Origin: Octopus bimaculoides
Lineage: Eukaryota
Direction of reading: 5' to 3'
Length of the DNA stretch: 37,687 nt
Assembly: GCF_001194135.2 (NCBI RefSeq)
Contig: NC_068982.1
Coordinates: 115,404,688 to 115,442,374, forward strand
Numbering within the stretch: the stretch's first letter is position 1; each line of letters opens with the position of its first letter. Below, one piece after another: positions 237 to 34,973 of the stretch. Made by a program: the position numbers and the translations under genes. Below the pieces are notes generated by a model. That model saw only the letters and a program-made list of their open reading frames with translations, was not told the DNA's origin and did not search any database.

Positions 237-1715
237 TCATTAACATCATTTAATGTCTGGTTTCCATGCTGGCATGGGTTAGGTGCTTTGATCGGAGCTA
301 GTAACACCGGGAGATGTAACAGGTTCCATTGTCTGTTCTGGCATGGTTTCTATGGCTGGATGCTCTTCCAAATGTTAACCACTCCATAAAGTGTACTGGT
401 TATTTTTTATGTGGTCCCATAAAAAGCACTGGTGCTTTTTATGCGGTCCCAGCACTGGTATCAATTCTGCTGTGGTGGACAGGCCTTCTTGGTGAATGGC
501 TCGTCTTGAGTACAGCAAAATGTCAGATATCTTAGTCCTTTGTCATCCCCTTTATAAGATTCAGTGTCTTGAGATCAGCTTTCAATATTTTGTTCTGTGT
601 CTTTCTGGGCCTCCCTCTTTCACAATTTCTTTCCACTTCAAGTGATTGGCACTTTTGTATGCAACTGTCTACATCCATATACATCACATGACCTAACCAG
701 CACAGTCTTCTCGCTTGCACACTGCATTTAATTCCTCTTATGCTCAACTTTTCTCTCAATACACTAGCACTGTCACACATGTACACTTACACTGCACATC
801 CAGCAGAGCATACTTGCTTCATCCCTCTCTAGCCTTCGCATGTCTTCTGCGTTCAGGGCCCACATCTCACTGACATGTAGCATTGCTGTTTGTATACAAA
901 CATCATACAATCTTTCTTTCATGCAGAGCGAGACCTTTAGTTGCCAACTAAAGTAAAAGCTTTCTGAATTTTTTCTATATTATTCTTATTCTAGCAATTA
1001 CACTTTCAGTGCATTCTCCCACACAGCCAGTTAGATCCCCTAAGTAGTGAAATTATCCACTACTTCTGAAGAGTATCTGTAGTTTTTGTGGCTCTTGTGC
1101 ATTTTCCACATACAAACACTATCTTCTCTGACAACCTTCTTATTATTCTGCTGCACCTCTTGTGTATCGATAGCTTGCACTGGGTACACCATATAGACTT
1201 TTTGTCTACACCTTTCCTACATATCAAGCAAGGCCATTTACCTGATGGGGAAGGATCCTGTCCATTTTCTTGCTAATTCCAGTAAGTAGTCTTTGCTAAG
1301 TTAACCTTAAGGCCTTTTGATTTCAGGTTTTGCTTCCACACCTGGAATTTCTTTTCTAGTTCTGTTACAGAATCTGCTATAAGAGCAAGATCATCAGCAT
1401 ATAACTGTTTCCAGGAGCAGCTGGTATTGAATTCTTGTGTTATGGCCTGGATGATGATGATGAATAGGAAATTGAGAACCGAACCCTGATGAGTGCCTAC
1501 CTGTACACTAAATTCATCACTATGCTCATGGTTAACTCTCACCTTACAAAATATCTGTACATGGTATGTGTGATTTTCAAAGGTCACTCGTCCCCAAGCT
1601 TCGTCAGAGCTCACCATATCACCCAGTGAGGTACCCTATCAAAGGTTTTCTCTGAATCAACAATCAGAAAGTACAATGGTTTATTCTTAGCCAAATACTT
1701 CTCCTTGCATGTGCG
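237..1715 (-). mobile_element. Degenerate RTE-clade LINE: RT core, C-terminus and 3' UTR ending in a (TGA)n-like tail
   Basis: Minus-strand peptides DSEKTFDRVP, QVGTHQGSVL..F, LYADDLALIA, RRLCWLGHVM and GRPRKT. The 3' UTR motif ggctggatgc(t)cttcc recurs throughout the window. Confidence 0.85.
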
Positions 1716-10827: not shown

Positions 10828-12184
10828 ATATATATATATATATAGTGAAGGACAAAGAGAAAATGGAGAATAAAAAGAATGTATTTATTGATTTATTTGC
10901 ATGTTATAAAAAAGATGATGTTTCTTTAAAAAAGACATTACAAATAAATGGATTGATTGGAAGTTGGAAGCTCAAAAAATTAAGATTAAAAACAGAAAAA
11001 AGAACCTACGTATATGTTTCAGTCGAACTATCTAGATGATGGGAATCTCCAAGCATATTGTTTAGTGCCAGGGAAGTTCTCACATTCAAAACTATATTGT
11101 GGTAGGACTTCTTCAGGGTTCAAAAAAGAGCTAACACAACTTAAGTGATCATTTTATCTTTTGAGGGACGTGTATAGTATTAGCAGGTTAAAGTTAAAGG
11201 CTATATATTGAGGTTTAATTTGATTGAACATCAAAACATAAAACAAAGTAAAATAAAGAAATTCACTGTTTCTATTTTTTATTTGGCACCTATCTGACCC
11301 AGATATTATGTTTATAACCATTGTATTCATATGAAACACGCTCCACCAATTAATAGTCCCTTCTTGTACTTCAATATTCTCATAAATATTAATTTTATTT
11401 GCAACAATAACTACTCAATATTCACATCATATTTCTATTTATTTTTAGACCCAACACCTACCTTTAATAAATTATTTAACCCAAATCCTAATTTATTAGA
11501 TACATACAGGATATAAATATAAATGTATGTTTGTGCGTATGTATGCTAGTATGTGTGTATGTACATACAGTTGTATGTACATATGTTTATATGTATGTAT
11601 GCATGTATGTATGCATGTATGTATGTATGTATGTATGTACATATGTATGTATGTAGACACATATATACATATACACATACATACACATGTGCATGCTTTC
11701 ATACAAGTCTAAATTTTCATCAGTTAGCAAAGAAGTTAATTGAATAACTGCAATTATATGTATTTTTCCTTGCTCTTCCCCACATGATTTTTTTCATTAA
11801 GAATGTAATGCATAACCATATTTTCCTTCTTTTCTATGAAACAAGCAAACAAAAAAAAAAAAAAAANNNNNNNNNNAAAAAAAAAAAAAAAAAAATCCAA
11901 AAGAATCCAAAGCTTTTAGAAATTTGAAAAATGTTGGGTATCATACAGATACAGTTTCATGTGCCTGCTTACTTATTTACAAGTCAAGTAGAGGATTAGA
12001 AAAAGTAAAGTATCATATGCATGAAAAACAGGATAATGCGTGTTTGCATTCATACAGACACATATATATACATACATGCATACACATATACATACAACTG
12101 TATGTACATACATACAAGCACACACATACACGCACACACATACATATATCACCAGCATCATAAACAGTTGCCTAAAAATGTCAT

Positions 12185-12786
12185 TATGATATCTACTGAT
12201 GAGACATGATGTAGCTAGGACACTATATAATGAAATTTGTCAGAAGGATAACCCCAGGACAAAGAAATAAGAACCCACAGTATGGTAGAAGCCAGTAGCC
12301 ACTCATAATAAAAAGAAGTATTCGTGGAATGTCCCAGTAAAAACCTCAATAAAATGTAAACACAATAGACTTGACATAATGATTTAGGATAGAGAAGAGA
12401 AACTGTGTACAGTTGTGGAAATCAGCTACCCAACAGATGTTATCATAAAGCTGAAGATCAGTGGAAAAGAGAATACCTATGTTGAACTATTGAGAAACCT
12501 GCAGTTACTATCCAGATTACAAGTTTAGGTTCATACCTGTAATTACTGGGACACTAAGATATGTGACACACTGCCTACCAATCTTGAGAAATTAGGAAGG
12601 GAGAAAGCTGATTCAAGGACTACAGATCCAAGCCATCACTGGAACTGTAAAAATCTGTAAAACTTTCCAGAAGTTTATCATTTAAGTATATGTGAGAATG
12701 TCTAGACATGCAAGTATATCCATGAGAAGACATACAGAAAACAAAACATACAAATCTGTTCACATACATACATACATACATACATA
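12185..12786 (+). mobile_element. R4/Dong-type REL retrotransposon, 3' end with (CATA)n tail
   Basis: Homologous to 25330-25857 (RHDVVARTL, KHNRLDIMI, CTVVEISYP). Ends in (CATA)n. Confidence 0.85.
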
Positions 12787-12789
12787 CCA

Positions 12790-13585
12790 ACATTTGGGCT
12801 GCTTGATTAGATGCTTGATGATATTCGAGCCATTGATGTGAAAACCCCCAAAATACTAACAAGCACACATAATTTCCATATAAACAGTGAAGGCAGAAGA
12901 GGCTTAACATCAATCCAAAATGTCTTTGAATGTTGCATTGGCAACATCTTTTAACCACCAAATGTCGAAGTGCATCCCTTGACCAAGTTTGCATACATGA
13001 GACTGATAACATCATAAGACTTGGAAGGTAGCTCCTTGAGCAACACTCTTTGTCTGATAACCTAGAATACATGCCTAAAGAAGTCGCATGATTCTACTGC
13101 AACGTATCATCAGATGAAAGAATGAGCCTATATGAGCAGAAAACTATGCATGGATATGTTACTAGAAAGCTCTGTGATGATAGTAACATTGATCATCAAA
13201 GCAGTTTATCACGGACCAATAGCCAGATTACTACCTCCCACTNNNNNNNNNNACGGACCAATAGCCAGATTACTACCTCCCACTTTGAAGGGTATGCATT
13301 TGCAATCCAGGAACAGGAAATATCAACCAAGTACCTGATGTACAAGAGGGATAGAGATGCATGTAAAGCTGTAAAAGTGTGACAACCAATGCAGACTTTG
13401 TTGAGTTCACATTGAAGATATCACCCACATCATAAACAGTTGTCCAAAAGTGTCATCTTGGTATTATCTACCGATGAGACATGACGTTGTAGCTAGGACA
13501 CTCTACAATGAAATCCGTCGGAAGGATAATCCCGAGGACAAAGAAATAAGAACCCACAATATGGTAGAAGCCATAGCCACAGCAT
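12790..13585 (+). mobile_element. Second R4/Dong fragment (post-RT region and CCHC knuckle)
   Basis: FEGYAFAIQEQEISTKYL, CDNQCRLC..H.EDITHIINSC and RHDVVARTLYNEIRRKD. Homologous to 24620-25470. Confidence 0.85.
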
Positions 13586-14299
13586 ACCTTCTCGTCGTCT
13601 GCATTAAATTCAAATCTTCGATGTTGGATATTTATATGCATCCTTACCTACCTATATACTTATATAAATATGTATTTGCATGTGCATACTAGATTAGAGG
13701 ATATTTAATTAAAGTTTGTTCTTAAAGGACATGTTGGACCATTTAGTCTGGTTTTGCTTGAAATGACTTTAATCAAAGGTCTGCTTTTTGAGGGTCTACC
13801 TAAGGTCATGGGTGTCACCTCTTCAGCTATGACTAAACAATGAAAAGAAAAAAATAAACAAATAAAAAGCAACTACATTACTCAGAATTCCTGAGTTTTG
13901 AACATTTTTTAATATTACAAACAGCAGCTATGATTTCTTTCAATTTCCCTTTTAATGCTGAAAAATTACAAATAGAAAGTATTTTCCACCAGAAGTACCT
14001 AATTACATAATTACTGAAATGATTTATTCTTGAATTTCATTGCTTAAATTGAATCAATTTTTGGCAGCATTACATTTAGCCAACATCTCTATCACCATCA
14101 CTCTTCTCTTTCTTTTTGTTTCCCTGTAACATTCCAACAATATTGTTTTTAGGTCAAAAATTAATATTGAAAATCTCATGAAGGATATAAAAATTGTTTC
14201 CTTCACTATGCGTATGTTTTAGATGTGCATACATGAGTGTGCAGAGAAAGGAAGAGAGAGAGAGAAAGAGAGAGGGTACAGAGAGAGAGAGAGAGAGAA

Positions 14300-14332
<33 letters not shown>

Positions 14333-14892
14333 AGTAGAAAGAGGAAGGAAGGGAAGGGAAGAGAGTTTGTATCAGTGTGTATGTATGTATCATTACCAAC
14401 TTCTATGTATATATATTCTATGTATGTATATCTATGCTTGTGTGTTAAACATATGTACATATCATCATCATCATCAGCAGCAGTAGCAGTATTATTTTTA
14501 TATCTATTTTTCCATGCTTGCATGGGTTGGATGAGATCTTTCTAACATAGCATCCTGTCACATCCTTCTTACATCCTCTTTATCCAATGGCCATGTCTCA
14601 CTACATTGCAGCATCACAATTTGGACATATGCATTCTACAATCTACCTTTCACTTGGAGAGGGCTCTAACCTAGTATGCACATGCATATACATATTTATA
14701 TAAGTAGGTAGGTATGCATATATGTAAATATGTGTTTGTGGATGTAAATAAGTCTATCTTGGCAATATCACTTTCAGTAACAGCAGCATCATTTTACTTG
14801 TTCTTCTGTTCTTCCACACTGAAATAAGTGGACTATTTTTACAGTCCACATTATCTTGCACACAAAGCAGCAGAGTAAAATCAATCAACACA

Positions 14893-15003
<111 letters not shown>

Positions 15004-15259
15004 TCTCTCTCTCTCTTTCACTCTCTCCCTTTCTCTGCACATTCATGTATGCATATCCAAAACATACAGAGTGGAACACTTAAGCATAGTGAAAGGACCA
15101 CCGCTTGTATTTTATTGTGCCTCCATCACTAGAGTACTGGCTGCCTCATTCAATAGGCATTAATAGAATATCTTGTACTCTACATCAGTTCCTATTCAAA
15201 GTAGCTGCTGTAGTGAGACACTTCCTAAACTGTTGACTAGTTTGTAATGAACTGAAAAT

Positions 15260-17100: not shown

Positions 17101-18563
17101 ATCATCAACATCATCATTGTTTAACGTCCACTTTCCATGGGTTGGACGATTTGACTGAGGACTGGCGAACCAGATGGCTGCACCAGGCTCCAATCTGATC
17201 TGGCAGAGTTTCTACAGCTGGATGCCCTTCCTAACGCCAACCACTTTGCGAGTGTAGTGGGTGCTTTTACGTGCCACCAGTACAAGGGCCAGTCAGGCAG
17301 TACTGGCAACAGCCATGCTCTGGCAATGATCATGCTGGGACGGTGCTGTTAGCACTCCACTGGCACAAGTGCCAGTCATCGAATTTGGTTCAATTATGAT
17401 TTCGATTTCACTTGCCCCAACAGGTCTTCGCAAGCAGAGTTTAGAGTCCAATGAAGGAAAGGTACACACAAGTGGACTGGCTACACCCCTGACAAAAGCC
17501 ACGGATTATGGTCTCACTTGGCTTGCCGGGTCTTCTCACGCACAGCATATTTCCAAAGGTCTTGGTCACTAGTCATTGCCTCGGTGAGGCCTAATGTTCA
17601 AAGGCTTCATGTTCACTACCTCATCCAAAGGTCTTGGTCACTAGTCATTGCCTCAGTGAGGCCTAATGTTCAAAGGCCTCATGTTCACTACCTCATCCCA
17701 GGTTCCTTCAACTGCTAGGGTGTGGCACTTTTTCACACAGCTATCCTCATCCATTCTCGCCACATGACCATACCAGCGCAGTCGTCTCTCTTGCACACCA
17801 CAACTGATGCTTCTTAGGTTCAACTTTCTCTCAAGGTACTTACACTCTGTCGAGTACGCACACTGACATTACACATCCATCGGAGCATACTGGCTTCATT
17901 TCTTTCGAGCTTACGCATGTCCTCAGCAGTCACGGCCCATGTTTCACTGCCATGAAGCATGGCTGTTTGTACACATGCGTCATAGTCTGCCTTTTACTCT
18001 GAGCGAGAGGCCCTTTGTCACCAGCAGAGGTAAGAGCTCTCTGAACTTTGCCCAGGCTATTCTTATTCTAGCAGCTACACTTTCAGCGCACCCTCTCCCG
18101 CTACTGACATGGTCACCTACGTAATGGAGCTTTCCCTGTCTTCATAATTGCTTTATCTATCATGGTACTGTCAACTCGGATAGCTGGTCCCTCTGTTGGG
18201 TTGACATTCAGCAAACTCTTTCTCCCATTCATTCTCTTTATTGAGCAACTTTTCATAGTGGCGTCTCCAAACCTCTCTCTTTGCAGCCACGTTCAGTGCA
18301 AGTGAACCATCATCCATGCGGACACATTTCTCTCCTACGACATCACAATTCTCTCTCACACACAATCTTGCAACATGAAATACCTCAAGTCTTTGATCCT
18401 CACAGTGCAGAACAATTGGCAACTTTTTTCTCATCTGCTTCCTCTCTGGCTAAATAAACCTGTCTCCTAGCTTCCCTTCTGGCAGTCTGATACAATTCCC
18501 TGCTACCGCTGTTCTTCCAGTCCTTCCAAGCCTGTTTCTTTTCTCTAATAGCCCTGTCAACAG
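17101..18563 (-). mobile_element. Relatively young RTE LINE, 5'-truncated and internally deleted, with a ~74-bp tandem duplication at about 17552-17698
   Basis: VDRAIREKKQAWKDWK, EVWRRHYEKLLNKENEW, AARIRIAWAKFRELLPLL and RRLRWYGHV. The RT core is missing at a jump near 18140. Full 3' UTR, CpGs retained. Confidence 0.9.
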
Positions 18564-18564
18564 C

Positions 18565-19369
18565 ACAGTATTGGCAGCGGCCGATGATGCGGTGATGTTG
18601 GCGGCAGCTGCGGAGATGTTTGTGGAGGTGGTATCGGCAGTCGCAGCTGTGGTGATGTTCGTAGTGGTGGTGGCAGCAGTTGTGACGTTGCCGATGGTTG
18701 CGGTGGTGGCAGCGGCGGCAGCACAGGTGGTCGTGGTGGTGANNNNNNNNNNNNNNNNNNNNNNNNNNNNNNNNNNNNNNNNNNNNNNNNNNNNNNNNNN
18801 NNNNNNNNNNNNNNNNNNNNNNNNNNNNNNNNNNNNNNNNNNNNNNNNNNNNNNNNNNNNNNNNNNNNNNNNNNNNNNNNNNNNNNNNNNNNNNNNNNNN
18901 NNNNNNNNNNNNNNNNNNNNNNNNNNNNNNNNNNNNNNNNNNNNNNNNNNNNNNNNNNNNNNNNNNNNNNNNNNNNNNNNNNNNNNNNNNNNNNNNNNNN
19001 NNNNNNNNNNNNNNNNNNNNNNNNNNNNNNNNNNNNNNNNNNNNNNNNNNNNNNNNNGGCGGCAGCGGCGGTTGCGGAGATGATCCCGGTGGTGGTGGCG
19101 GTGGCGGCGGTGGCGGAGATGATCCTGGCGGCGGCAGCGGCGGTTGCGGAGATGATCCTGGTGGTGGTGGTGATGGCGTCGGCGGTGGCTGCGGAGATTA
19201 TCGTAGTAGTGATGGTGGTGGTGGTTTTGATGGTGTTTGGTGGCGACTGTTGGAAAAGGACTTGAAAATTCACAGAATTTGGTCTCATGTGCGTGCAGAA
19301 AAATATTTAACATCCGAGGATATTCATCCTGATACGGTTACATTAGAGGACGACACTCCAATTCGCTGA
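18565..19369. other. GC-rich 3-periodic repeat with long open frames on both strands (Gly/Cys/Asp-rich on +; His/Arg/Cys-rich or Thr/Ala-rich on -), interrupted by a 315-N gap
   Basis: + frame 19058-19369: GGSGGCGDDPGG...WWRLLEKDLKIHRIWSHVRAEKYLTSEDIHPDTVTLEDDTPIR*. - frame from ATG 19313: ...HHQDHLRNRRCRRQDHLRHRRH.... Coding status is unresolved. Confidence 0.4.
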
Positions 19370-19470
19370 CTTCCATCATTATTGATTTGGGATGGCATCG
19401 GCATGTCAAAACCATACATTCGCGAGCAAATTAAATATTTGTTAGCTAACAAACCAAGATTTGCTAGAAA

Positions 19471-19843
19471 TTAGAGGCAAAACATTGTTTTAAACAGACA
19501 TTTATTAAAATTCGAGATCGAAAGTTTGGAATACACTATGATTTAATAAAATGAATTAAATTTCTCGTATCTCCTTCTCCACATATTTACGAGTCTATAA
19601 TATAAGAGTCAACCATGCACAGGTACGTTCAATTTGTTGAATGTGAGTCCCATCTGTTATGAAAACAATTATAGAATAGAGGCAAAACATTGTTTTAAAC
19701 AGACATTTATTAAAATTCGAGATCGAAAGTTTGGAATAAACTGTATGATTTAATAAAATAAATTAAATTTCTCGTATCTCTTTCTCCACATATTTGTGAG
19801 TCTATAATATAAGAGTCAATCATGCCCAGGTACGTTCAATTAT
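19471..19843. repeat. Tandem duplication, period about 205 bp, with AATAAA on both strands in each copy
   Basis: agaggcaaaacattgttttaaacagacatttattaaaattcgagatcg...caggtacgttcaatt occurs twice. Confidence 0.9.
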
Positions 19844-19888
19844 AGAACAAGGTGGCTATACTCCTTGTGTACATGCACAGCGTCTTTG

Positions 19889-19962
19889 GTTACTATGGAA
19901 ACAATTCTTCACAATCAGCTTTGGAACACGTTGAGTTTCTTTGCTTTGGTTACTATAGAAAC
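19889..19962. promoter_or_regulatory. Two RFX X-box matches exactly 60 bp apart
   Basis: GTTACTATGGAAAC (19889-19902) and GTTACTATAGAAAC (19949-19962) both fit GTHNYY-AT-RRNAAC. Confidence 0.45.
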
Positions 19963-20259
19963 AGACTTCTTCGCCACGGTGATGTCTATTCTGATTTTTT
20001 GCAAATTTTAAAGGCTAACTTTATAAAATTTGATTTATAGGGAAAACAATTGGAACAATATTGTAAACAGACGAAAACCACAAAGATCCCTCCAATAACC
20101 ATATTTGTTCAATAATATCTTGTCGGTTTAAGTGTGTGAGAGAGAGAGAAATTGTGTGTATGAGATTGAAAGAGGGGCGTGAGAGAGTTAATGCTTATGT
20201 ATGTATATAAGAGAGTGGGGAGACTTTCAAATGGTGAGCCTAGATGATGACCATTTTAG

Positions 20260-20545
20260 AGAGTGAGAGGGAAGGAGAGAGAAGGAGCGCGAGGAAGACA
20301 AACGAATGAAGAGAGAGGGGTGAAAGAGAGAGAGAGAGGGGGGGAAGAAAGAAAGAGAGGAAGAAAAGATGAATGAAGAAGAGAAGAGAGAGAGGGAGAA
20401 AGAAAGAGGGAGAGAGAAAGGAGACTGGGGTCAGAACTTTGAGGGAGAGGGAGGGAAGAAAGAAAGAGGAACAAAAAAAAAAGACGGATGAAGAGAAGAG
20501 AGGGAGGGAGAAAGAAAGAGGGAGAGAGAAAGAGAAAGAGAGGGA
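20260..20545. repeat. Degenerate GA-rich polypurine tract
   Basis: Direct. Confidence 0.85.
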
Positions 20546-20659
20546 GACAAGTCAAAACTTTCTTGATTCTAAGCCAGGATTCGAAACTGAATCTTGCATT
20601 TTTCTTACCAGTTCCTATTGTTCCGACTTTTGCAGAACTTGTGGCTATGTCGAGAGAGC

Positions 20660-20977
20660 TGGTTCCTCCTGATGATGTCTTGAGCTAACTGGATCCTAAT
20701 CCACCAAGGGAAGGTATGTCAGAAGAAAGTAATTCAACAACGCGGGTTGATGAACCATAAGACGTGTGGCCAGAACCTCCTGAAAAATAACCATAGCGAG
20801 GGACATTCCACAGTTGAATTAAAACAGTCACAAACAGTGAAAGAAGACATGCACCCAACACCAGAGCTGAAGACACCTCCGAAAGGGGGTGGCCCCGCCA
20901 CGTCAAAACGGTAGAGGAGTAGGGGCCGAAACCGGACGTGGTTCCTCCTGATGATGTCTTGAGCTAACTGGATCCTA
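20660..20977. repeat. 39-bp perfect direct repeat, copies 279 bp apart
   Basis: tggttcctcctgatgatgtcttgagctaactggatccta at 20660-20698 and 20939-20977. Confidence 0.9.
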
Positions 20978-21116: not shown

Positions 21117-21314
21117 TGTTTTAAGCGAGCCATGGCAGTTCAGCCCGAACAATAAAGACAAAACAAATTTTCGGAAACATTTATTAATCGTCTTATATTC
21201 TTAATTCCAATTTTCAACTTTGTTTTAAGCGACCCATGCAGTTCAGCCCAAACAATAAAGACAAAACAAATTTTCGGAAACATTTTTATTAATCGTCTTA
21301 TATTCTTAATTCCA
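21117..21314 (-). terminator. Tandemly duplicated polyadenylation cassette of the protamine-like gene
   Basis: ~93-bp units at 21221-21314 and 21117-21209. On the minus strand each has AATAAA (21290-21285; 21185-21180) followed by a U/GU-rich tract (tttgttttgtctttattgtt). Confidence 0.65.
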
Positions 21315-21445
21315 CGTGCGGTAAGCAATAATGGCCAACTTAAGAAGCGAAAGTCCAAGAGATGTTAAGTGCCTCATTTTGTGAAGTCGCAAAAGCCAAC
21401 CGAGAACTATTTTTATAGAAATAGTTCAATTCACTTCTGTCGTCT

Positions 21446-21715
21446 TCATCGTCGCCTCCTTCGGCCGCCCCTCCTTCTCCTTCGTCCTCTCCTGCCTCTT
21501 CTTCTTGACCTTCGGGATCGTCGTCGTCGTCGTCCACCAATGGAATACACTCGTCTACGTCTTAATCTGCCTCCGTTTAAACTACCATAACTTCTCACAC
21601 TGGATACACTGCGCTCTCGTCTTCCGCCACCGACCAGCAGACTCTGCCGGCTCATAGATGGGCGGCGTATTGCTCTACGCGTTCTCGAACGCGATACGTT
21701 TTCTTTAACAATCAT
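21446..21715 (-). CDS. Intronless arginine-rich protamine-precursor-like protein (sperm nuclear basic protein), 89 aa
   Basis: MIVKENVSRSRTRRAIRRPSMSRQSLLVGGGRRERSVSSVRSYGSLNGGRLRRRRVYSIGGRRRRRSRRSRRRGRRGRRRRRGGRRRRR*. 38/89 residues are Arg and 22 of the last 28 are Arg. Mixed CGN/AGR codons, so not a simple repeat. ATG has A at -3. TATA upstream and AATAAA about 155 nt after the stop. The ORF track's GTG start at 21733 is not a eukaryotic start. Confidence 0.8.
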   Translation of the reverse strand: MIVKENVSRSRTRRAIRRPSMSRQSLLVGGGRRERSVSSVRSYGSLNGGRLRRRRVYSIGGRRRRRSRRSRRRGRRGRRRRRGGRRRRR

Positions 21716-21816
21716 CCTTGTGTCTGTCGTCACTCAAGGCTTCCGAAAGTGTCTCACCCCTCTCTCTCTCTCTATTGCAGCGAAAGTTAGAGCAAGATTT
21801 AAAATCGGTACAACTA

Positions 21817-21915
21817 TGAACTAACTCGACGAACGTCGTGTTTTATATAAGGTAGGTGTACCACGTGATCAGCCAGATCAAAGATATTATTGGTTGAAAA
21901 GAACGGTCACGTGAC
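21817..21915 (-). promoter_or_regulatory. Pol II promoter of the protamine-like gene
   Basis: Minus strand: TATATAAAA starting at 21849; Inr-like TTAGTT/TCATAG about 27-32 nt downstream (21822/21817); CACGTG at 21862-21867; CCAAT at 21893-21889; palindromic GTCACGTGAC at 21906-21915. Confidence 0.65.
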
Positions 21916-22027
21916 AGGAATGGTACATTGATATTCCCATTTCCAGACATACAGACACACGTTCGTGCGCGTTTTCGCATTCGTATTCACACACATGCAC
22001 ACGCTCACACACGCACACATGCACACG

Positions 22028-22029
<2 letters not shown>

Positions 22030-22088
<59 letters not shown>
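22030..22088. repeat. (CA)n microsatellite upstream of the promoter
   Basis: Direct. Confidence 0.95.
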
Positions 22089-22091
<3 letters not shown>

Positions 22092-22359
22092 GAGTTCGTT
22101 GAAAGTTCCAGCGTTCCAAGTTCTCACGCAATTCTTTATGACATCATTGAAATTACGCTCACCGCCAAAGTTTTGAAAGGAAAGCAAATTCAATTTCGAA
22201 AAAAAAAAAAAATATTGGGAATACGTTTGTGGACAGACATGATTAGATGCATTCACTTTGTCCGTAGTAGCTACTTAAATTATGTTTGGTGGTCGGTAAA
22301 GAAGCAAACACGCACGCACGCACGCACGCACACATGCACGCACACACGTACGTACGTAT

Positions 22360-22775
22360 GTATGTCTTCTATTTTTTTAATTATCATAAATCTTCCACTG
22401 AGGAGGGAGCTAGTTTCCAACAAGGATACAAGGCTCCATCTTTGGGATGTAGTTAACACAGACAAATTCACATTTGGAACTTGAGAGGAGTCTTGCATAT
22501 TTTTTCTGTTCGACTCACAGATTGCACTTGTAATGTACGAATTAGCTGCTCGATTTCTCTTTCTGAAAATCCCAGTTTATCCAGATTCTCCTGTAAGCTT
22601 TTACTAACAAAACCTAGTGCTCCAGTTATCATTGATATGAATTCATAGTCTAGATATAGAGGGTGGAGGTTTCGAAGCAGATGTCCATAGATATCCTCCT
22701 CTTCTTTGATTTTCAAAGAGATATTTATATCTGCAGGGCAGCTGACCTCTCTGATGGTACATACCTTTGCGTCAT
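22360..22775 (-). mobile_element. R4/Dong-type 3' end, a diverged second family
   Basis: KVCTIREVSCPADINISLKIKEEEDIYGHLLRNL..ITGALGFV..QVQSVSRTEKICKT parallels the C-terminus at 25560-25850. Flanked by (TATG)n on both sides. Confidence 0.8.
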
Positions 22776-24859
22776 ATGTATGTATGTATGTTATTTCGCA
22801 CAACTTAGCTACATAGCCTTATTACGTACAACTTGTATTGACTTAAACGCCAAATCGAAAGACAGCCAGTGTATACGTATATTTACAGTTCTGTCTAAAG
22901 ATCGTATTTTTCTATTGCTATTCTAGTCTCAGCCCTTCCATATCTGTCCGTTTTTCCTGTCTGCTCATCTTACACCCCAGCAGCTTCTGTTGCTGATATT
23001 TCCATATTGAACAATATCGATAGAAGGTGTCAAAATCGTGATGGTATTTAGTCGCCGACTAATGGGGGATAGAGGATATTTGCGTTCATTTGTGTGTATG
23101 TATTTTTGTTCTCCCCGTAAATTTATTTGTCGACCAAACTGTGATATGTTTTAAATAAATACATACATACATACAAGCAAATCTCTATACAACTTACTAA
23201 CAAAAAGTGAAGGAGATAGAAGTGATGTTTGGCGATAGCAAAAAGAGGATACTGATCACTATCAAGCAGGAACTAATAGCTGTCAATGAGAAACTCCGAC
23301 ATCAGAAGAAAACAACCGAGAGAAAAACAATAGACAAACAATTTAACCGGAACCAGGCAGTAACGTACAGAGATATGAGAGGAGAAACGGTGAACATCAT
23401 AGAAGCTCCTTCACTAGAAGACATAGACTCCTTCTGGAGGAAAATTTGGAACGAGGAGATGGAGTTTAACCAAGATGCTCTGTGGCTGGAAGAAATTTGA
23501 AGAAGTTATTGTCCCTGCATTACACCCAAGACAGACAGTATTGATGGTGATACCTTTATGACTGTAATCCAGAAACTTCAGGAAGGAAAAGCCCTTGGAA
23601 GAGACTTGATTGTTGGATACTAATACAAGCAGCTAACCTTCTAATGACCATATCTTATCAACCTATACGAGCAAGCTCTCAATAGGAATAGTAGCATATC
23701 AGACTAGTTAGCTCTGGCAGAGACAAAACTGATCCCCAAATGCAGAATCACTCACGTGAGCGTATTTAAACCTCTTCCTCTAAGACCATTGTGAAAGTAA
23801 TAGCATGATCACAGCAGAACAAGCTACTGGAGGAAGGATGTGTACCGAGCAATTGTTAGTAAACAAACCTGTAATATCAGAGGTGCGGGAGCATAGAAGG
23901 GACCTAGTTTAAATGTAACTAGACTACAAGAAAGCCTTTGACTCTGTCCCCTACTCATAGATGTTAGAAGCCCTTCGACAAGTCCCAGTGAACATAGTCA
24001 AAGCCATAGTTGACCTGACTTCATCATGGGCCACCATCTTGAAATTAAACAGAAGGATTGTATTACCACTGATAGAATACAGTATCGCAGAGGCACATTC
24101 CAAGGGATCAGCATTTCTGTGATGTTATTTATACTTTCTGTAAACTCCTTCTTACTCAGGTTGAGGATGTCTAAAGGATATCTCACTTGTTCCCAAGGAA
24201 ACAGAAATAGCAAAATTACACACTATTTTTTTGTGGATGACTCGAAACTATATGCCAAGAATATGATTGAGATGAAAAAGTGCCTTGACATGGTTACAAT
24301 ATTCTCAAAGGATATAGGGCTAGAGTTTGATCAAGATAAATGTTGCTATATGGTTGTGAAAAGAGAGAAAACTGTAAACCAGACTTGGAACATCTCCATC
24401 AACAACTTGACTGTTTCCTCTATATCTGATGAGTAATGTTACAGGTATCATGGGGTAGACGAAAACATATCTTACAATGGCACCTGTAACAATTTTACAG
24501 TCAAATAAAAAAAATTTGGACCTTGGAACTCTCTGCATTCAATAAAACAGTGGCCTTCAATCTGTTTGTAATGCCAGTACTCTTACCGACATTTGGGCTG
24601 TTTGATTGGACTCTTGATGGGATCCGAGCCATTGATGTGAAAACCCAGAAGATACTAACGAGCACATCAATTCAGACTGCTTTTGAATGTCGTATCATTT
24701 CCCTTCCTCAATATCTTTTAACCACCAAGTATGGAAGTGCATCCCCTGACCATGTTTGCGTACATGAGGCTGATAACATCATAAGACTTGGAAAGCAGCT
24801 CCTTGAGCAGCATTCCTTATCTGATAATCTTAAATACATGCCCAAAGAAGTCATACGAT

Positions 24860-25009
24860 CACTAGCGTAGCTAGAGTGTGTTCCGCCCGGGGCAGCTCTT
24901 CCTTTTGTTACCTCCGGACACCACAAAAAACACGTATTGCCTACAGTAAATACAAAAGTGCCGCTCGGGGCGGACCGCCCTTACCGCCCCCATCCCAGCT
25001 ACACTAGTG
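24860..25009. mobile_element. 150-bp hAT-type MITE
   Basis: 13-bp TIR CACTAG(C/T)GTAGCT and degenerate 8-bp TSD catacgat/cgtacgac. Absent from the homologous site near 13085. Confidence 0.8.
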
Positions 25010-25857
25010 CGTACGACTCTACTGCAATGTATCATGAGATGAAAGGAAGAACATATATCAGCAGAAGACTATGCATGGATAAGTTCGTAGAAAGCTGTGA
25101 GATGATAGTAACATTGATCATCAAAGTAGTCTATAATGGACCAACAACTGGATTACTATCTTGCAATTTAAAGGGTATGCGTTTGCAATCCAGGAACAGA
25201 AAATATCAACCAAATACCTGATGCACAGAAGGGACAGAGATGCAGGGAAAAGCAGCAAAATGTGACAACCAATGCAGACTTAGTGGAGTTCACACTGAAG
25301 AAATCGCCTACATCATAAGCAGTTGTCTGAAAATGTCATCACGGTATTATCTACCGATGAGAGATGATGTTGTAGCTAGGACACTGTATAACGAGATCCG
25401 TCGGAAGGATAACTCCGAGGACAGAAAAAAAATAAGAACCCACAGTATGGTGGAAGCCATAGCCACTCATACTAAAAAGGAGTACCCGTGGAATGACCCA
25501 GTGAAAACCTCAATAAAATGTAAACACAATAGACCTGACATAATGATTTGGGATAGAGAAGAGAAACTGTGTACAGTTGTGGAAATTGGCTGCCCAGCAG
25601 ATGTTAGCATAAAGCTGAAAATAAGTGAAAAAGAAAATACCTATGCTGAACTATTGAGAAATCTGCAGTTACTCTATCCAGATTACAAGTTTAAGTTTAT
25701 ACTTGCAGTTATTGGGGCACTGCCTAAATACCAATCTTGAGAAATTAGGCTTCTTAAAACCAGAAAGGAAAAAGCTAATTCGAAGACTACAGATCCAATC
25801 TATCACTGGAATTGTGAAAATCTGTAAAACTTTCCAGAAGTTTATCATTTAAGTATA

Positions 25858-26849
25858 TGTAGAGAAACGACCGTGCGAACCAAAGGAGAATGGTGACGAA
25901 TGGAACAGGCTCCTTTTAACGCGTCGCACGGTCGACACAAAATATGATATATTATATTATATATGTTATAATACTATAACATAGAGAACTAGGAAATGCC
26001 AGTAAGGAAAAGATAGGGAGTCAACCGATAAAGATGTATAACAGTAAGGTTTATTAGAGCATTAAACTGTATGTCTGTGTGTGAGTGTATGCGACATAAT
26101 AAAACACAATATAAGACAGGCCGTCATGTAAACAAAAGAGTGTATGTATACAAATATATGTATGTGAATGCAAGCGATACAGAGCACATAGAAAAGAGTC
26201 TGTAACACGGATAAGAAAATACCAGTTCTCAGTTAAGGTACACAGTAGTTAGAAAGTCTGTATATAAGAGGTTGAGGCGTTGAGGCAGAGCTAAGTCACT
26301 TGTCGTGCAGTTGAGGCTTCTATGCCGAGCCGGGCTACTTGATACAGGGGTTTCTCGCAGGTGTCGAATTCTGGCTGTTATTTCGTGGTAAAACAATTCA
26401 CGCAAACAGTAGTGTTGAGAGAAGCTGCGGTTGCAGTTGATAGCTTGTGTACGTAGAGACGTAGTGTTGACGTTGGGGACGAAGGTTGTAGTAAATAGTT
26501 GAACGATGGTGTTGATGTCGTCGCTGGAAACTGGCTGGTTGGTGTTACGTGGTCAACGACCAGATCTTAGAAGATCTGAAGCCGCGACGAAATGACGCGG
26601 ATAAAACAGGCTATTTATAGGTAAAGGGAGGCTCCAGAAACATTAGGAAAACACTCTCTCACGTGACCTTATTAGATGGCCACGATTGGTCGGTATGCAC
26701 CCTGGCGCGAAACAGGACTGGAGACATAATGCCGCGCAAATAAAAGTCAGTCAGGGTGATGGACACAGCGGGGGCCAAGGCAGGAAAGAGATGTTACCTG
26801 CTACGTTCGCATTTGTAAATAAATAACCGAGAGAAGTGGTTTCACTACA
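25858..26849 (-). mobile_element. 992-bp solo LTR (Ty3/gypsy-like)
   Basis: TG...CA ends, 11-bp terminal inverted repeat TGTAG(A/T)GAAAC, 4-bp TSD TATA (25854-57, 26850-53). Empty site seen near 12685. Minus-strand TATAAATA at 26619-26612 and AATAAA at 26055-26050. Confidence 0.85.
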
Positions 26850-27064
26850 TATATATGAGAATGTCTAGACATGCAAGTATATGCATGAGAATACGTACAT
26901 AAAACAAAACTTACAAATTTGCTCACATACATACATACATACATACATACGTACGTACGTACGTACATACATACATACATACATACATACATACATACAT
27001 ACATACATAAATACATAAATACATGGTCAGCCATTATTATGATTGACAGTTGACTGAACACTAT

Positions 27065-27235
27065 TCAATTTTTTTTCTCCGTGTTTTTCTCCTTGTCTCC
27101 GTATTCTTTCTGTTGAAGAGCTTAGCTCGAAACGTCAAAGACTTTCCGTATTCCCGAGCGTCATACTAATACATCCTTTTGTTATTTACACCACCTGTCC
27201 TCGTCTGTTGTTGTTTTTTCGTATATTCTCCCACA
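27065..27235 (+). mobile_element. Penelope-like terminal repeat fragment
   Basis: ttgaagagcttagctcgaaacgtcaaagac resembles the Penelope-like tail motif. Confidence 0.5.
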
Positions 27236-27317
27236 TTCATACATACAAAAGTACCCTGTTGATGTTGAAATTCCAGTGACGGATTCTTGGAGGATCTAGG
27301 TGAGAAACAGATTCTTC

Positions 27318-27876
27318 GGATCTTTTTTAAAACGGGGGCCACATTTTTCATTAATGTTTTACGTAGTGTTTTTGGTACCGAAAGACTTTCAAACTTCGTA
27401 TACTTATCTATTTTGTGTTATAGAACAGAAAAATATTTCTGTATTCGAATTTATTTCATGTAAAAAATTGTCTTATTTCGATAATTTCAACCAATCACTG
27501 ACAAGTATTCAGTTGTTTATATTTACTCCTTTGGCTGATTAAGCGGTGTAAAGCGTATTTAATTTCCATAGCTTCGTTTTGCTTTTTTCTTTTTAAATTT
27601 GCTGTTTTACCCTAATCCTAACCCTATCACCGATAGAATTGTTTCAGAATCGTTTGTTTATGTAGTCGGCACTTAATGTATATCGGCTGAATGGACGTCA
27701 GTGATTGGTTGAAATTACAGAAATACGACAACTTTAACATGGAATAACTTAGGGATTTCTTTTTTTTTTAAGAAGACTAAGAAAAAAAGATGTTTTATAT
27801 GACACATTCTACCAGTGTTCCAAGTTTCAAAGTGTTTCGTTAATGAAAAATGTGGCCCCCGTTTTAAAAAAGATCC
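27318..27876. mobile_element. MITE with perfect 37-bp TIRs (Merlin-like)
   Basis: TIR ggatcttttttaaaacgggggccacatttttcattaa at 27318-27354 and 27840-27876. Flanks gattcttc/aaataggg show no TSD. Confidence 0.85.
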
Positions 27877-28297
27877 AAATAGGGTTTATGCTGATAAGAG
27901 ACAGAAAATCATTTGTCTAGCTTGACCTCATTTAGTTAGAAGTAAATATAAATACGGAACTTAAAATCGGTTCCATCTTGTTGATTATTCGGGCTCTGGT
28001 CAAAGAGTATCTCCTTGCCTTCACTTATGGACTGTCATCGCGTGACAATACAACTTTCACCCTATCTACTTGTCAGCCCAGAGAGGCAGACTCTCTTACT
28101 CACTCTCGTTTTCCCATCAGTCCTACCACAGTCATTCAAAGATGTTGTATCCTGCATTGTATCGTTGAAAATAAAGGTATATTTCAATTAATAATATTTT
28201 TTCCCTTTCGTTTATTTGCAACATGCAATTGTTATACATGCATATGTATGTATGTATGTATGTGTGTGTGTATGTATGTATGTATGTATGTATGTGT

Positions 28298-30112: not shown

Positions 30113-30565
30113 ATGTTTGTGTGCCTGTGTTTGTCCCCCTAGCATTGCTTGACAATCGATGCTGGTGTGTTTATGTCCCCGTCACTTAGCGGTTCGGCAA
30201 AAAGAGACCGATAGAATAAGTACTAGGCTTACAAAGAATAAGTCCCGGGGTTGATTTGCTCGACTAAAGGCGGTGCTCCAGCATGGCTGCAGTCAAATGA
30301 CTGAAACAAGTAAAAGAGTAAAGAGAAAGAGTATACATTATGCAAGACAAAATTGCACGTTATAAACGAAATGAAATCTTGGAAATTCTCAAGAAACAAA
30401 AGTTTCCATTATTGATAGATGAGAGTTCAGACATCTCATTGACACAAATCTTAGCAATAGTTGTTTGCTTTTTTGATGAACAATCGCTTAATGTCAAGGA
30501 TGCTCTTCTGGATGCAATTGTAGTAGAAAATGGTTCATCTCAGCGTTTGTATGATGCCCTCAAGT
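29174..30565 (+). pseudogene. hAT transposon fossil: left end, BED zinc finger and first catalytic Asp
   Basis: Ac-like terminus TAGGGATG at 29174. From 29691: YSQNFKKSWL..WLQQ..CYCVCC..LLDH..TAKH. From 30340: FPLLIDESSDISLTQILAIVV. Split by a SINE and truncated by an RTE. Confidence 0.8.
30007..30331 (+). mobile_element. 5'-truncated cephalopod SINE with internal (TA)n/(TG)n, nested in the hAT fossil
   Basis: gaccaaagccttgtgagtggatttggtagacggaaactgaaagaagcc ... cagtcaaatgactgaaacaagtaaaagag. Confidence 0.8.
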
Positions 30566-30566
30566 C

Positions 30567-30830
30567 TCACCAACAAGAGATTGCCATCTATCTTGATCTT
30601 AGGCAATGGTTTGCAGTTATTCCCCAGATTGTAGTTGCCTGCCTGTGCTTCAGTTTCTGTAGACATTCTCCATGTTTTTTTGTTTTTTTTTGGTCTGTCA
30701 CACTTGTCCCTTCTTTGGGTGTCCACTGGAGGGCTTACTTTGTAATATTGGAAACATTTTCCATAGGGTGTGTCCCAGTCAAACCACATTTCCTCCACTT
30801 GATTTGGGCTTTGATAGGTTACTGGTTCAC
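30567..30830 (-). mobile_element. RTE-clade LINE 3' end (third family)
   Basis: Across frameshifts: QIKWRK..G.H, NITK*ALQWTP, RPKK..TWRMSTETEA and A*DQDRWQSLVG, matching the RTE WIGHTLR/ALxWNP/GRPKxTW/DRxRW pattern. Confidence 0.65.
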
Positions 30831-32049
30831 CTTTTCCTGAGAAAGTATTTGATAATGTGGACAGGGTGACACTGGAAATTGGTATCACTGTCATCATACT
30901 TTGAGTGATTATTACTTTGGTCAGATTTGCTTATGATTGATTAACATGTCAACTTGTACATGGTGAAACTTTAATGCAACTATTCTCTGTCCTGATGTGA
31001 GTTGGGCAAGTGAGACAAAGATGTCTACTATATCCTCTTCTTTTGCTAATGACAATTGACTAAGTGATGAAAGAAACAACCGAAGTACAAGAGGAATACC
31101 AAGGTTAAACAGTAGCATCATTAATAATCATGGTTGTTTGCCTAGGACTGTTGACACCTCTCATTTGCAATGTTTTCTTCATATCTGAACATTAAAAAGA
31201 AAGAAAGAAAGAAAGAAAGAAAGAGAGAAAGGAAGAAAAGCAAAACAGAGAGTGTGAGAGAGAAAGAAAGAAGAAAGACATATTTTACCCTCTGAAGTTC
31301 TATTACAATTGAATGAAGATCTAGGTTTGAGAGAAACAACAAATGCTACAGATAGAAATGCAGCAAAGCAAATCCATAGACCCAGTTTTCAGTGACATGA
31401 TGGTACTACTGCTGTTGTTGATTGTATTTAATTAGCTATCCTTCAGGTAACACCCTGCTAACTTCAGCTTTGTCATTTCTCTTATTCAACAAAGTACCTG
31501 TCATATTGTGCAAAATTATGCTGGTTGTATCCGCTTCTCAAGAAATTGATCTGTGTATATGTATTTATGTATATTTTGTGTGTATGTGTTTTGGTGTGTA
31601 AATTTACATGTGGTATCTGAGTATGTGTGTGTGTGTTACAAGTATTCAGACTTGTCTGGTTCTCTTTCTATCCACATTTTCCACAAATAACTTAACCTAC
31701 AAATGTTCTAGCTGGACATTGGCTGTATCACTGACATTACTCTCACCCACATCACTCCTCTAACTAGCTCATAAAAAATAGTATGCCATGCATGTGTGCA
31801 CGTGTATGTGTGTGTGTGTGTATGAGTGTGTGTATGTGTGCATGTGTATGTGTCAGAGAGAGAGAGAGAGAGTATGTGTGTGTGTGTGTGTGTGCGTTTA
31901 TGATGGAAGGTGAGTAAGCTGTGTGAACAACAGAACTGGTGAGTGTAAGCAAAAGCAAAAAGAAGCCAAAGTGCCTTGTAATCCCTGATCAAGTAAACTA
32001 CTGGTATATAAGTGTTCCAATATATTGTGCATCACACTACCCACAGATA

Positions 32050-32270: not shown

Positions 32271-33927
32271 CTACCACACATAATATAAATGTTAAAATCT
32301 AAATAGGGCCTCAAAGTTTTCCATCTTGATTATTCTCAAGGCAATTCTCCCATTTCATCTCGCTTAATGAGAAGAAGGAGGAGGAGGAGGTGTACATTCT
32401 GGGCTATCTTATTAAAAGAATAACTAGGAAAAATACCCAGGAATGCCTACTGTATGAATGCTTGATAGTAAAGTGGGGACCAGCATACTTGAGAAGTCAA
32501 GAATAGTAAATACACTTACAAAAAGAAAGGTTTGGTAAAGAAGAAAAAATAACAAAGAAAGCATAGAAAATGAGTTGCTTTATGGACAGCTTTTGTGGCA
32601 TAGAGAGGCTTGGTATTGTTGTCTGTGTGACCTAAAAATGAGGCTGGATTAACTTCCTGATTAACATTTGTGTATATCAATTAAGAAAAGAAAATATGAA
32701 ATAAATAATAAATGAAATAAAAGAGGGTAAAAAATTAGAATGGTTTTTTAATCAAATGGTGGATTGATGAATGTGTCTGATGAATGTGACATTATAAAGA
32801 AGGAAAGTAATGACACAATTAGTAGAGAACAAATGTATAATTAATCATATGTTTTAATTCTCTCAAGCCAAAGTATGTATGTATGTGTGTATGTATGTAT
32901 GTATGTATGTGTGTATGTATGTATGTACATACATATGCACACATGCACGCATGCATGCATGTATGTACACATGCATGCATGTATGTACTTGCTTAAACAC
33001 ACATATATCTAATACACTTAAACGTACATATAACTATTTATACATACACACACACATATATATATACACATGTACACACATGCTCACACACAGACATAGA
33101 CACACACACACATACTCACACACACTATAAAGAAAGAAATATGAGGACAATATGACGCCATTTTATAAGTTGTAGAATGTTTTCAAAGTGTCATAATAAA
33201 GTTTCTCTTCTTCTGTGATGTTAAAATATTCATANNNNNNNNNNCATGCATGTATGTACACATGCATGCATGTATGTACTTGCTTAAACACACATATATC
33301 TAATACACTTAAACGTACATATAACTATTTATACATACACACACACATATATATATACACATGTACACACATGCTCACACACAGACATAGACACACACAC
33401 ACACACTCACACACACTATAAAGAAAGAAATATGAGGACAATATGACGCCATTTTATAAGTTGTAGAATGTTTTCAAAGTGTCATAATAAAGTTTCTCTT
33501 CTTCTGTGATGTTAAAATATTCATAGACCCATTTAAATTTACAATCATTATCCTAAATGAAGAAAAAAGAGGATAAACAACAAGAAGACAAATCCCTCTT
33601 ATAGGCTTGTACTAAAGTATGTGGAGGTGAACTAAGAGATTTTAATTCGTTCAAATTACACTCATAGTAAAGAGTACAGATAATTAGTCTAATGAGTAAT
33701 TCTGGTTAAGAAATGTTGGGGAGAGAATAATGAAATTTAAATTCATAAAATTTATTTTAATTAGAATATCAAGTTTGAGGTTTTTTTTAATTTGATGATA
33801 TTTGTGTTGTTATTAAAGGACATTAATAATGTAAGAGATAGTTCTAACGAGAAGCCGAAACAGGGTCATAGACAATAGTGTCCACCATACATACTGAAAA
33901 AATAAAAATAAAAACATCCAGAGTGTA

Positions 33928-34304: not shown

Positions 34305-34973
34305 GGATCTTTTTTAAAACGGGGGCCACATTTTTCATTAACGAAACACTTTGAAACTTGGAACACTGGTAGAATGTGTCATATAAAACATCTTTTTCTC
34401 TTAGTCTTCTCAAAAAAAAAAGAAATCCCTAAGTTATTCCATGTTAAAGTTGTCGTATTTCTGTAATTTCAACCAATCACTGACGTCCATTCAGCCGATA
34501 TACATTAAGTGCCGACTACATAAACAAACGATNNNNNNNNNNNNNNNNNNNNNNNNNNNNNNNNNNNNNNNNNNNNNNNNNNNNNNNNNNNNNNNNNNNN
34601 NNNNNNNNNNNNNNNNNNNNNNNNNNNNNNNNNNNNNNNNNNNAGCAAATTTAAAAAGAAAAAAGCAAATAAAACGAAGAAAAAAAAAAGAAAATGAAAA
34701 AAGCAAATTTAAAATGAAAAAAAGCAAATAAAACGAAGCTATGGCTTAATCAGCCAAAGGAGTAAATATAAACAACTGAATACTTGTCAGTGATTGGTTG
34801 AAATTATCGAAATAAGACAATTTTTTACATGAAATAAATTCGAATACAAAAATATTTTTCTGTTCTATAACACAAAATAAATAAGTATATGAAGTTTGAA
34901 AGTCTTTCGGTACCAAAAACACTACGTAAAACATTAATGAAAAATGTGGCCCCCCCCGTTTTAAAAAAGATCC
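34305..34973. mobile_element. Second copy of the Merlin-like MITE, opposite orientation, spanning a gap
   Basis: Same TIR, with a perfect 8-bp TSD CCACTGAA at 34297-34304 and 34974-34981. Confidence 0.9.

Follow-up and report, generated by a model that had tools for sequence, protein, structure and literature searches.

We analysed a 37.7-kb stretch of Octopus bimaculoides DNA (37,687 nucleotides, hereafter the window). On the minus strand of the window, positions 21285-21915 carry the full anatomy of a small gene, collinear on one strand within 630 nt and with no intron needed, and the 89-residue product is rich in arginine. A real small gene is the single most likely reading of this segment, judging from its anatomy and from the frame-specific statistics described below. 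We assign it, with a confidence somewhat short of an even chance, as an unannotated gene with one exon, whose product would be a sperm nuclear basic protein (SNBP) of the protamine type. The use of the word protamine should be noted, since it refers here to composition and architecture and not to demonstrated membership. SNBPs change rapidly in evolution and seldom receive annotation, and their sequences have been characterised for only a few cephalopods. If the assignment is correct, the segment would open octopod sperm chromatin to study at the genome level (promoter, processing, and copy number) and serve as a worked example of finding such genes from sequence anatomy alone.

Gene anatomy and predicted protein

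The original prediction placed promoter elements, an ATG in a good context, a stop codon, and an AATAAA signal in a row on the minus strand, and all of them are present at the predicted positions. The parts of the unit are listed in the direction of transcription, where UTR and ORF denote untranslated region and open reading frame, respectively.

21906-21915, minus strand: GTCACGTGAC, a 10-bp palindrome that includes a CACGTG of E-box type and marks the distal end of the putative promoter
21889-21893, minus strand: CCAAT motif, ~45 nt upstream of the TATA box
21862-21867, minus strand: second CACGTG (atCACGTGgt), lying between CCAAT and the TATA box
21841-21849, minus strand: TATA box TATATAAAA, a motif match
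21716-21817, minus strand: predicted 5′ UTR of ~100 nt, with a short (GA)n run and no ATG
21446-21715, minus strand: coding sequence of 89 codons plus TGA, from the ATG at 21715-21713 to the TGA at 21448-21446
21533-21715, minus strand: N-terminal 61 codons of the ORF, a putative leader or processed region
21449-21532, minus strand: C-terminal 28 codons of the ORF, a putative DNA-binding protamine domain
21285-21290, minus strand: AATAAA poly(A) signal, 155 nt past the stop codon
21241-21280, minus strand: T/GT-rich stretch tttccgaaaatttgttttgtctttattgttt, downstream of AATAAA and at the position of a downstream cleavage element

Transcription would start at the A of tTCAtag, 32 nt past the TATA box, judging from the usual spacing of 25-32 nt. 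At the other end, the T/GT-rich stretch may act as the cleavage element, and the unspliced messenger RNA (mRNA) thus implied would be ~0.55 kb in length. The start codon lies in the context acaaggATGa with an A at position −3, and no further ATG is found within the 110 nt on its 5′ side. CACGTG occurs at seven sites in the window, three of which fall within 21313-21913.

The 3′ end of the unit overlaps a 103-bp tandem duplication (21117-21314, 1.9 copies, 94% match) with a second AATAAA at 21185-21180. The duplicated segment takes in the T-rich stretch as well as the AATAAA, which leaves a pair of alternative poly(A) signals spaced by ~105 nt.

The product of the ORF is MIVKENVSRSRTRRAIRRPSMSRQSLLVGGGRRERSVSSVRSYGSLNGGRLRRRRVYSIGGRRRRRSRRSRRRGRRGRRRRRGGRRRRR. 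It contains 38 Arg (42.7%), 13 Ser, 12 Gly, 2 Tyr, a single Lys, and no Cys, with a calculated pI of ~12 and a mass of 10.8 kDa. The C-terminal 28 residues (RRRRRSRRSRRRGRRGRRRRRGGRRRRR) are 78.6% Arg. Both measured Arg contents agree with those predicted originally, 43% for the whole ORF and 79% for its C-terminal 28-mer. The Arg content of the best window falls with length, from 79% over 28 aa to 69% over 32 aa, 66% over 41 aa, and 53% over 58 aa. In the C-terminal part, Arg clusters of 2-5 are separated by Ser or Gly and are encoded by 10 CGA, 7 AGG, and 5 AGA codons; the cluster pattern is RRRR-VYSIGG-RRRRR-S-RR-S-RRR-G-RR-G-RRRRR-GG-RRRRR. The N-terminal part is basic in a milder manner. 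Its 61 residues are 26% Arg and 18% Ser and bear RRPS, RERS, and RS sites, and the first 48 residues contain 11 Arg, 1 Lys, and 2 Glu. All six Arg codons are used in the whole ORF (AGA 12, CGA 12, AGG 7, CGT 3, CGC 3, and CGG 1).

Chance or a coding frame

The main rival explanation is that the ORF arose by chance, as a purine-rich, triplet-repeat-like stretch in a young or unmethylated CpG-rich patch, untranslated and surrounded by motifs that are common in AT-rich DNA. We consider this explanation possible but less likely than a real gene. Dinucleotide-preserving shuffles (n = 5000, CpG content kept) were made of the whole unit (21270-21830, 561 nt) and of the DNA for the N-terminal part (183 nt). 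ORF length is compatible with chance, as an ATG ORF of at least 89 aa appears in 310 of the 5000 shuffles of the whole unit (6%). An ORF with at least 38 Arg appears in none of them, the maximum being 22 Arg, although this result is partly trivial because shuffling breaks up the triplet repeats of the tail. The test of the N-terminal piece is the meaningful one, and there an open frame with at least 16 Arg is found in only 4 of 5000 shuffles (p ~0.001).

The DNA of the N-terminal 61 codons is non-repetitive, and the two remaining frames are closed by several stops. G occupies 49% of the second codon positions, and five of the six Arg codons are present. The Arg richness thus belongs to one reading frame and not to the base composition. 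Contrarily, the DNA of the C-terminal tail is T-poor and triplet-repeat-like, with AGG/GGA runs, (CGA)5, and (AGA)3. Since none of the three frames is closed in it, the tail on its own proves little.

The window supplies a local control for low-complexity DNA that mimics basic proteins. Two (GA)n-type purine tracts, at 14223-15046 and 20256-20672, give spurious ORFs of 53-99 aa that are rich in Arg and Glu or in Lys and Glu, with up to 43% Arg in those derived from (GA)n. Among the ATG ORFs of at least 50 aa in the window, only these artefacts (RERERE...) equal the 89-residue ORF in Arg richness, and a six-frame scan of the window gives no further Arg cluster besides them.

The CpG content should also be noted. 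The segment was predicted to lie in a CpG-rich island, and the CpG observed/expected ratio is indeed 1.42 over 21270-21830 as compared with 0.41 for the whole window. With 33 CpG per 400 nt, it is the most CpG-dense segment of the window, though not the only such patch. Values of ~1.0-1.5 are also found at 19100-19900 and 25800-27900, and the window alternates between DNA that is depleted in CpG and DNA that is not. A high CpG content may thus be a sign of young or unmethylated DNA instead of a promoter, which weighs on the side of chance.

Within the ORF, 19 CGN Arg codons are intact, and 12 of these are CGA, which a single deamination would turn into TGA. No in-frame stop of this origin is present, and the other products of deamination are lacking almost completely: Cys, Trp, and His do not occur, and Gln occurs once. 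The preservation of CGN codons in a CpG-poor window is consistent with a hypomethylated germline, with purifying selection, or with a young age.

The promoter and poly(A) motifs bear on both sides. TATA, CCAAT, and AATAAA are each common in the AT-rich sequence of the window, where both strands together contain 56 TATAAA (about one per 1.3 kb per strand), 61 CCAAT, and 80 AATAAA. A CCAAT motif alone is weak evidence because of its 61 occurrences. However, the motifs of the unit stand on the same strand in the correct order and with the correct spacing, and this counts for more than their mere presence. The good context of the ATG and the lack of an ATG ahead of it likewise argue against a chance ORF. 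If the ORF should nevertheless be one, it would warn that triplet-repeat-like DNA rich in CpG can take on the look of a complete small gene.

The acidic Asp/Glu frame at 21340-21540 was considered as an exon and rejected: the frame is closed just upstream, no plausible splice acceptor is present, and no Pfam match was obtained.

Relation to known protamines

Typical mature protamines are small and usually 60-80% Arg, with Arg tracts parted by neutral residues (PMC3073880). High Arg by itself does not define a protamine (PMC12216123). Two features of P-type SNBPs are found in the ORF, namely the small size (89 aa and 10.8 kDa, for a precursor expected to have ~100 aa or fewer) and the Arg clusters with neutral spacers. 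The Arg content of the P type is reached only if the ORF product is cleaved to ~30-40 residues, since that of the whole ORF is 42.7%.

The original prediction drew a parallel with the precursors of cuttlefish protamines. The squid and cuttlefish proteins (Loligo Sp1/Sp2 and Sepia T1/T2) are, like the candidate, small cephalopod proteins whose C-terminal Arg clusters occur together with Ser, Gly, and Tyr. They are made as longer precursors from which the N-terminal part is removed (PMC12216123), and the candidate may be processed in the same manner. Such N-terminal processing is common among invertebrate and vertebrate protamines (PMC12216123). Beyond this, the parallel is loose. Squid Sp2 is 58 aa long with 79% Arg and 4 Tyr, and Sp1 has 5 Tyr (PMC3073880), whereas the best 58 residues of the ORF contain 53% Arg and only 28-32 residues reach 69-79%. 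No window of 58 residues exceeds 53% Arg, in contrast to the domain of ~57-58 aa with ~77-79% Arg behind a short leader that characterises cephalopod precursors. The leader of decapod protamines has ~21 residues, and the N-terminal part of the ORF (48-61 aa) is both longer and more basic than this leader.

A further difference concerns cysteine. In Octopus vulgaris, the protamine arises from a precursor, and cysteine is present in it. That of Eledone cirrhosa is cysteine-rich, with disulphide bonds between protamine molecules, according to the title of the paper describing it (Gimenez-Bonafe 2002), whereas none of the 89 residues of the ORF is Cys. The ORF is thus not an evident orthologue of the Eledone protamine as that title presents it. 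These differences from both groups of cephalopod protamines weigh against the assignment. The predicted protamine-precursor gene therefore stands in its gene-like anatomy and frame-specific Arg-rich ORF, while the defining features of the squid and cuttlefish proteins, and of the Eledone protamine as titled, are lacking. For this reason, we file the product only as protamine-like by composition and architecture.

The Arg domain is fish-sized rather than squid-sized, judging from the Arg contents of the best windows. Salmine has 32 aa and 67% Arg (PMC3073880), and the best 32-residue window of the ORF has 69%. Both are Cys-free. In the window of the ORF, Arg runs of 2-5 are parted by Ser or Gly, and a GG pair stands ahead of the final Arg run. 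Fish protamine genes are intronless, as is the candidate gene. Unlike the ORF, salmine has Pro and Val spacers and no long N-terminal extension. The likeness is compositional and convergent, with no evidence of descent.

In layout, the ORF also resembles insect precursors. Those of Apis mellifera P2 and Tribolium castaneum combine a disordered, less charged N-terminal part with a highly charged, Arg-rich C-terminal part that is left after trimming, and one Tribolium precursor is also 89 aa long (the other is 177 aa) (PMC12216123). The insect genes had been missed by annotation and by filtered BLAST (PMC12216123). The resemblance is one of layout between different phyla, and the processing of the octopus product is a supposition drawn from its sequence.

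Relatives were sought in protein collections of 5.8 billion clusters, which include O. bimaculoides proteins and octopus transposon ORFs. The full ORF gave 8000 word-sharing candidates, none with E ≤ 1. The N-terminal 61 residues share 5-residue words with just four proteins, none of which scored, and phmmer against 1.84 billion cluster representatives gave no hits. Neither the 89-aa ATG form nor the 95-aa GTG form has an exact record in the product look-up collection, which takes in Logan and ENA contigs with octopus-type transposons. The prediction that the gene may be unannotated agrees with these results. No Pfam family was assigned to the ORF, the acidic frame at 21340-21540, or a plus-strand ORF at 21369-21590, and a PDB sequence search with the ORF returned none. 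Scans of 2.9 million viral contigs and of JGI metagenomes gave 600 pattern matches each, none of which was confirmed. Rfam and tRNA scans of the whole window found nothing, and an RNA gene is therefore not the explanation. Five peptide fragments of the ORF do not occur in the literature searched, and an open literature search found no octopod protamine sequence.

The protein, viral-contig, and metagenome searches thus gave none of the detectable relatives that P-type proteins have, and they lend no support to conservation or expression. In this respect they count against the gene and in favour of chance. Their weight is small, however, because composition filters suppress Arg-rich matches, annotation seldom includes such genes, and the searches extended to no cephalopod genome DNA. 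In the bee, the protamine gene came to light only after repeat filters had been switched off, and annotation of SNBPs has been called 'almost nonexistent' (PMC12216123). Absent annotation and failed searches are what is expected of such genes.

A real gene for an Arg/Ser-rich nuclear protein of another role, such as a spermatid transition-type, nucleolar, or RNA-binding peptide, would share all the gene-like evidence given above. The overall Arg content of only 43%, the N-terminal part that is basic and not neutral or acidic, and the absence of the Cys announced for Eledone in the title cited above would suit such a protein. Its RS, RRxS, and RxRS motifs resemble the kinase targets of many nuclear proteins. 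However, the ORF ends in uninterrupted Arg clusters of 3-5, and no Pfam match to an RNA-binding or other domain was obtained. Uninterrupted terminal Arg clusters are typical of protamines, whereas RS domains alternate Arg and Ser. We regard another role as improbable.

For a protamine-type gene, the following course may be proposed. The TATA/CCAAT promoter would direct synthesis of the ~0.55-kb mRNA specifically in male germ cells of the testis, and the mRNA would be translated to an intrinsically disordered precursor of 89 residues. The N-terminal two-thirds, moderately basic and Ser-rich with its RRPS, RERS, and RS sites, could be phosphorylated and possibly cleaved off. The Arg clusters of the C-terminal 28-41 residues would offset the charge of the DNA phosphates and take over from histones in condensing the chromatin of spermatids. 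The C-terminal fragment in sperm could begin, for example, near RLRRRRVYSIGG. On this course, spermiogenesis in the octopod would employ a short, fish-like poly-arginine protamine that lacks cysteine and derives from a long precursor, basic and rich in Ser, beside or instead of a cysteine-rich one of the kind named in the Eledone title; we hold this specific proposal to be possible but doubtful. A verified octopod gene would make it possible to ask whether protamines with and without cysteine occur side by side in a single lineage. If the proposal is true, charge-only and disulphide-linked locking of chromatin, the latter as that title has it, would coexist or have been exchanged within one cephalopod order.

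Genomic surroundings

The segment was predicted to be buried in transposon debris, a description borne out by the reverse-transcriptase and long interspersed nuclear element (LINE) fragments around it and by a weak DUF4371 match below the cut-off. On the promoter side, the neighbouring features are as follows.

21988-22089: (CA/TG)51 microsatellite, which bounds the unit on the promoter side
22468-22803, minus strand: C-terminal fragment of a LINE-type ORF, the nearest upstream transposon remnant, which is followed by a (CACG)n microsatellite, (CACG)12, at 22309-22356

The segment is single in the window, where no second copy was found other than the local 103-bp 3′ tandem duplication. The proteins searched include octopus transposon ORFs and contain no relative of the ORF, which argues against a high-copy repeat family, an origin by which the original prediction could have failed. 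A part of the neighbouring LINE was also rejected as an identity for the segment: the microsatellite intervenes, and no DNA similarity to the other LINE copies was detected.

These surroundings bear on the possibility that the segment is a non-functional or redundant young duplicate of a protamine-type gene elsewhere in the genome. Its isolated position among transposon remains, where it immediately follows a LINE 3′ fragment and microsatellites, would suit such an origin, and its undecayed CpG is compatible with young age. The 94%-identical 3′ tandem duplication indicates a recent local rearrangement. However, the ORF is intact, it has its own promoter motifs, neither a poly(A) tail nor an evident target-site duplication is present, and the protein collections yielded no parent or sister ORF. 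We give a duplicate only a slim chance. A processed retrocopy in particular was rejected, with no poly(A) tract past the signal and with promoter motifs present.

The least probable explanation, cargo of a mobile element or endogenous virus in the form of a nucleic-acid-condensing basic protein (transposon-encoded or, for example, of the baculovirus P6.9 type), draws on an R/S/G/Y composition that resembles viral protamine-like proteins (P6.9 is so described in PMC12159748), on a neighbourhood made up wholly of mobile-element remains, and on a CpG content that differs from the surroundings, but it is very unlikely in view of the promoter motifs of cellular TATA/CCAAT type, the single copy in the window, the absence of viral genes near the segment, and the lack of a confirmed relative among the viral contigs or of any relative among the octopus-derived transposon ORFs in the protein collection. 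A protamine-type gene remains our preferred reading of the segment.

Diverged LINE-type copies and fragments are found at 1273-1617 (minus), 12153-13580, 22468-22803 (minus), and 23207-25860 (plus). Reverse-transcriptase fragments (Pfam RVT_1) lie at 1273-1617 (minus) and 24026-24436. The LINE ORF at 25240-25740 matches 'uncharacterized protein' entries of Octopus bimaculoides at 68-76% identity, as well as ENA and Logan contigs. An ENA contig carrying a relative (P0001) of the window LINE ORF gives a 76% alignment at 22468-22803. In DNA, the transposon copies of the window are only 72-76% identical to the contigs retrieved. The DUF4371 match mentioned above (E 1e-4, below the Pfam cut-off) belongs to a 166-aa ORF at 30340-30840, which is probably a remnant of a hAT-type transposase.

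A pair of perfect direct repeats of 39 bp (ggatccagttagctcaagacatcatcaggaggaacca...) occurs a short way downstream of the candidate, at 20660-20698 and 20939-20977, with ~240 bp between them. The ORFs between the repeats have no Pfam match, and the pair is possibly a local duplication or a small element.

Other repeats of the window are associated with assembly gaps. Coding-like tandem repeats that are open in several frames (HRRRHHHH..., Thr/Ala-rich) occupy 18450-19313 around a gap of 315 N (18743-19057), and are probably a collapsed or unresolved minisatellite. Two inverted-repeat blocks of 211 and 228 nt, 99% complementary, are located at 27334-27876 and 34305-34954, 6.4-7.2 kb apart. A gap of 111 N (34533-34643) lies between the blocks of the right-hand arm, and the left arm is in a CpG-undepleted patch. 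These arms may belong to a young element bounded by long terminal inverted repeats, or else to an inverted duplication. Finally, two 281-nt copies at 32954-33234 and 33245-33525 are 100% identical and are separated by a gap of 10 N (33235-33244); this pair looks like a scaffolding artefact and not a biological duplication.

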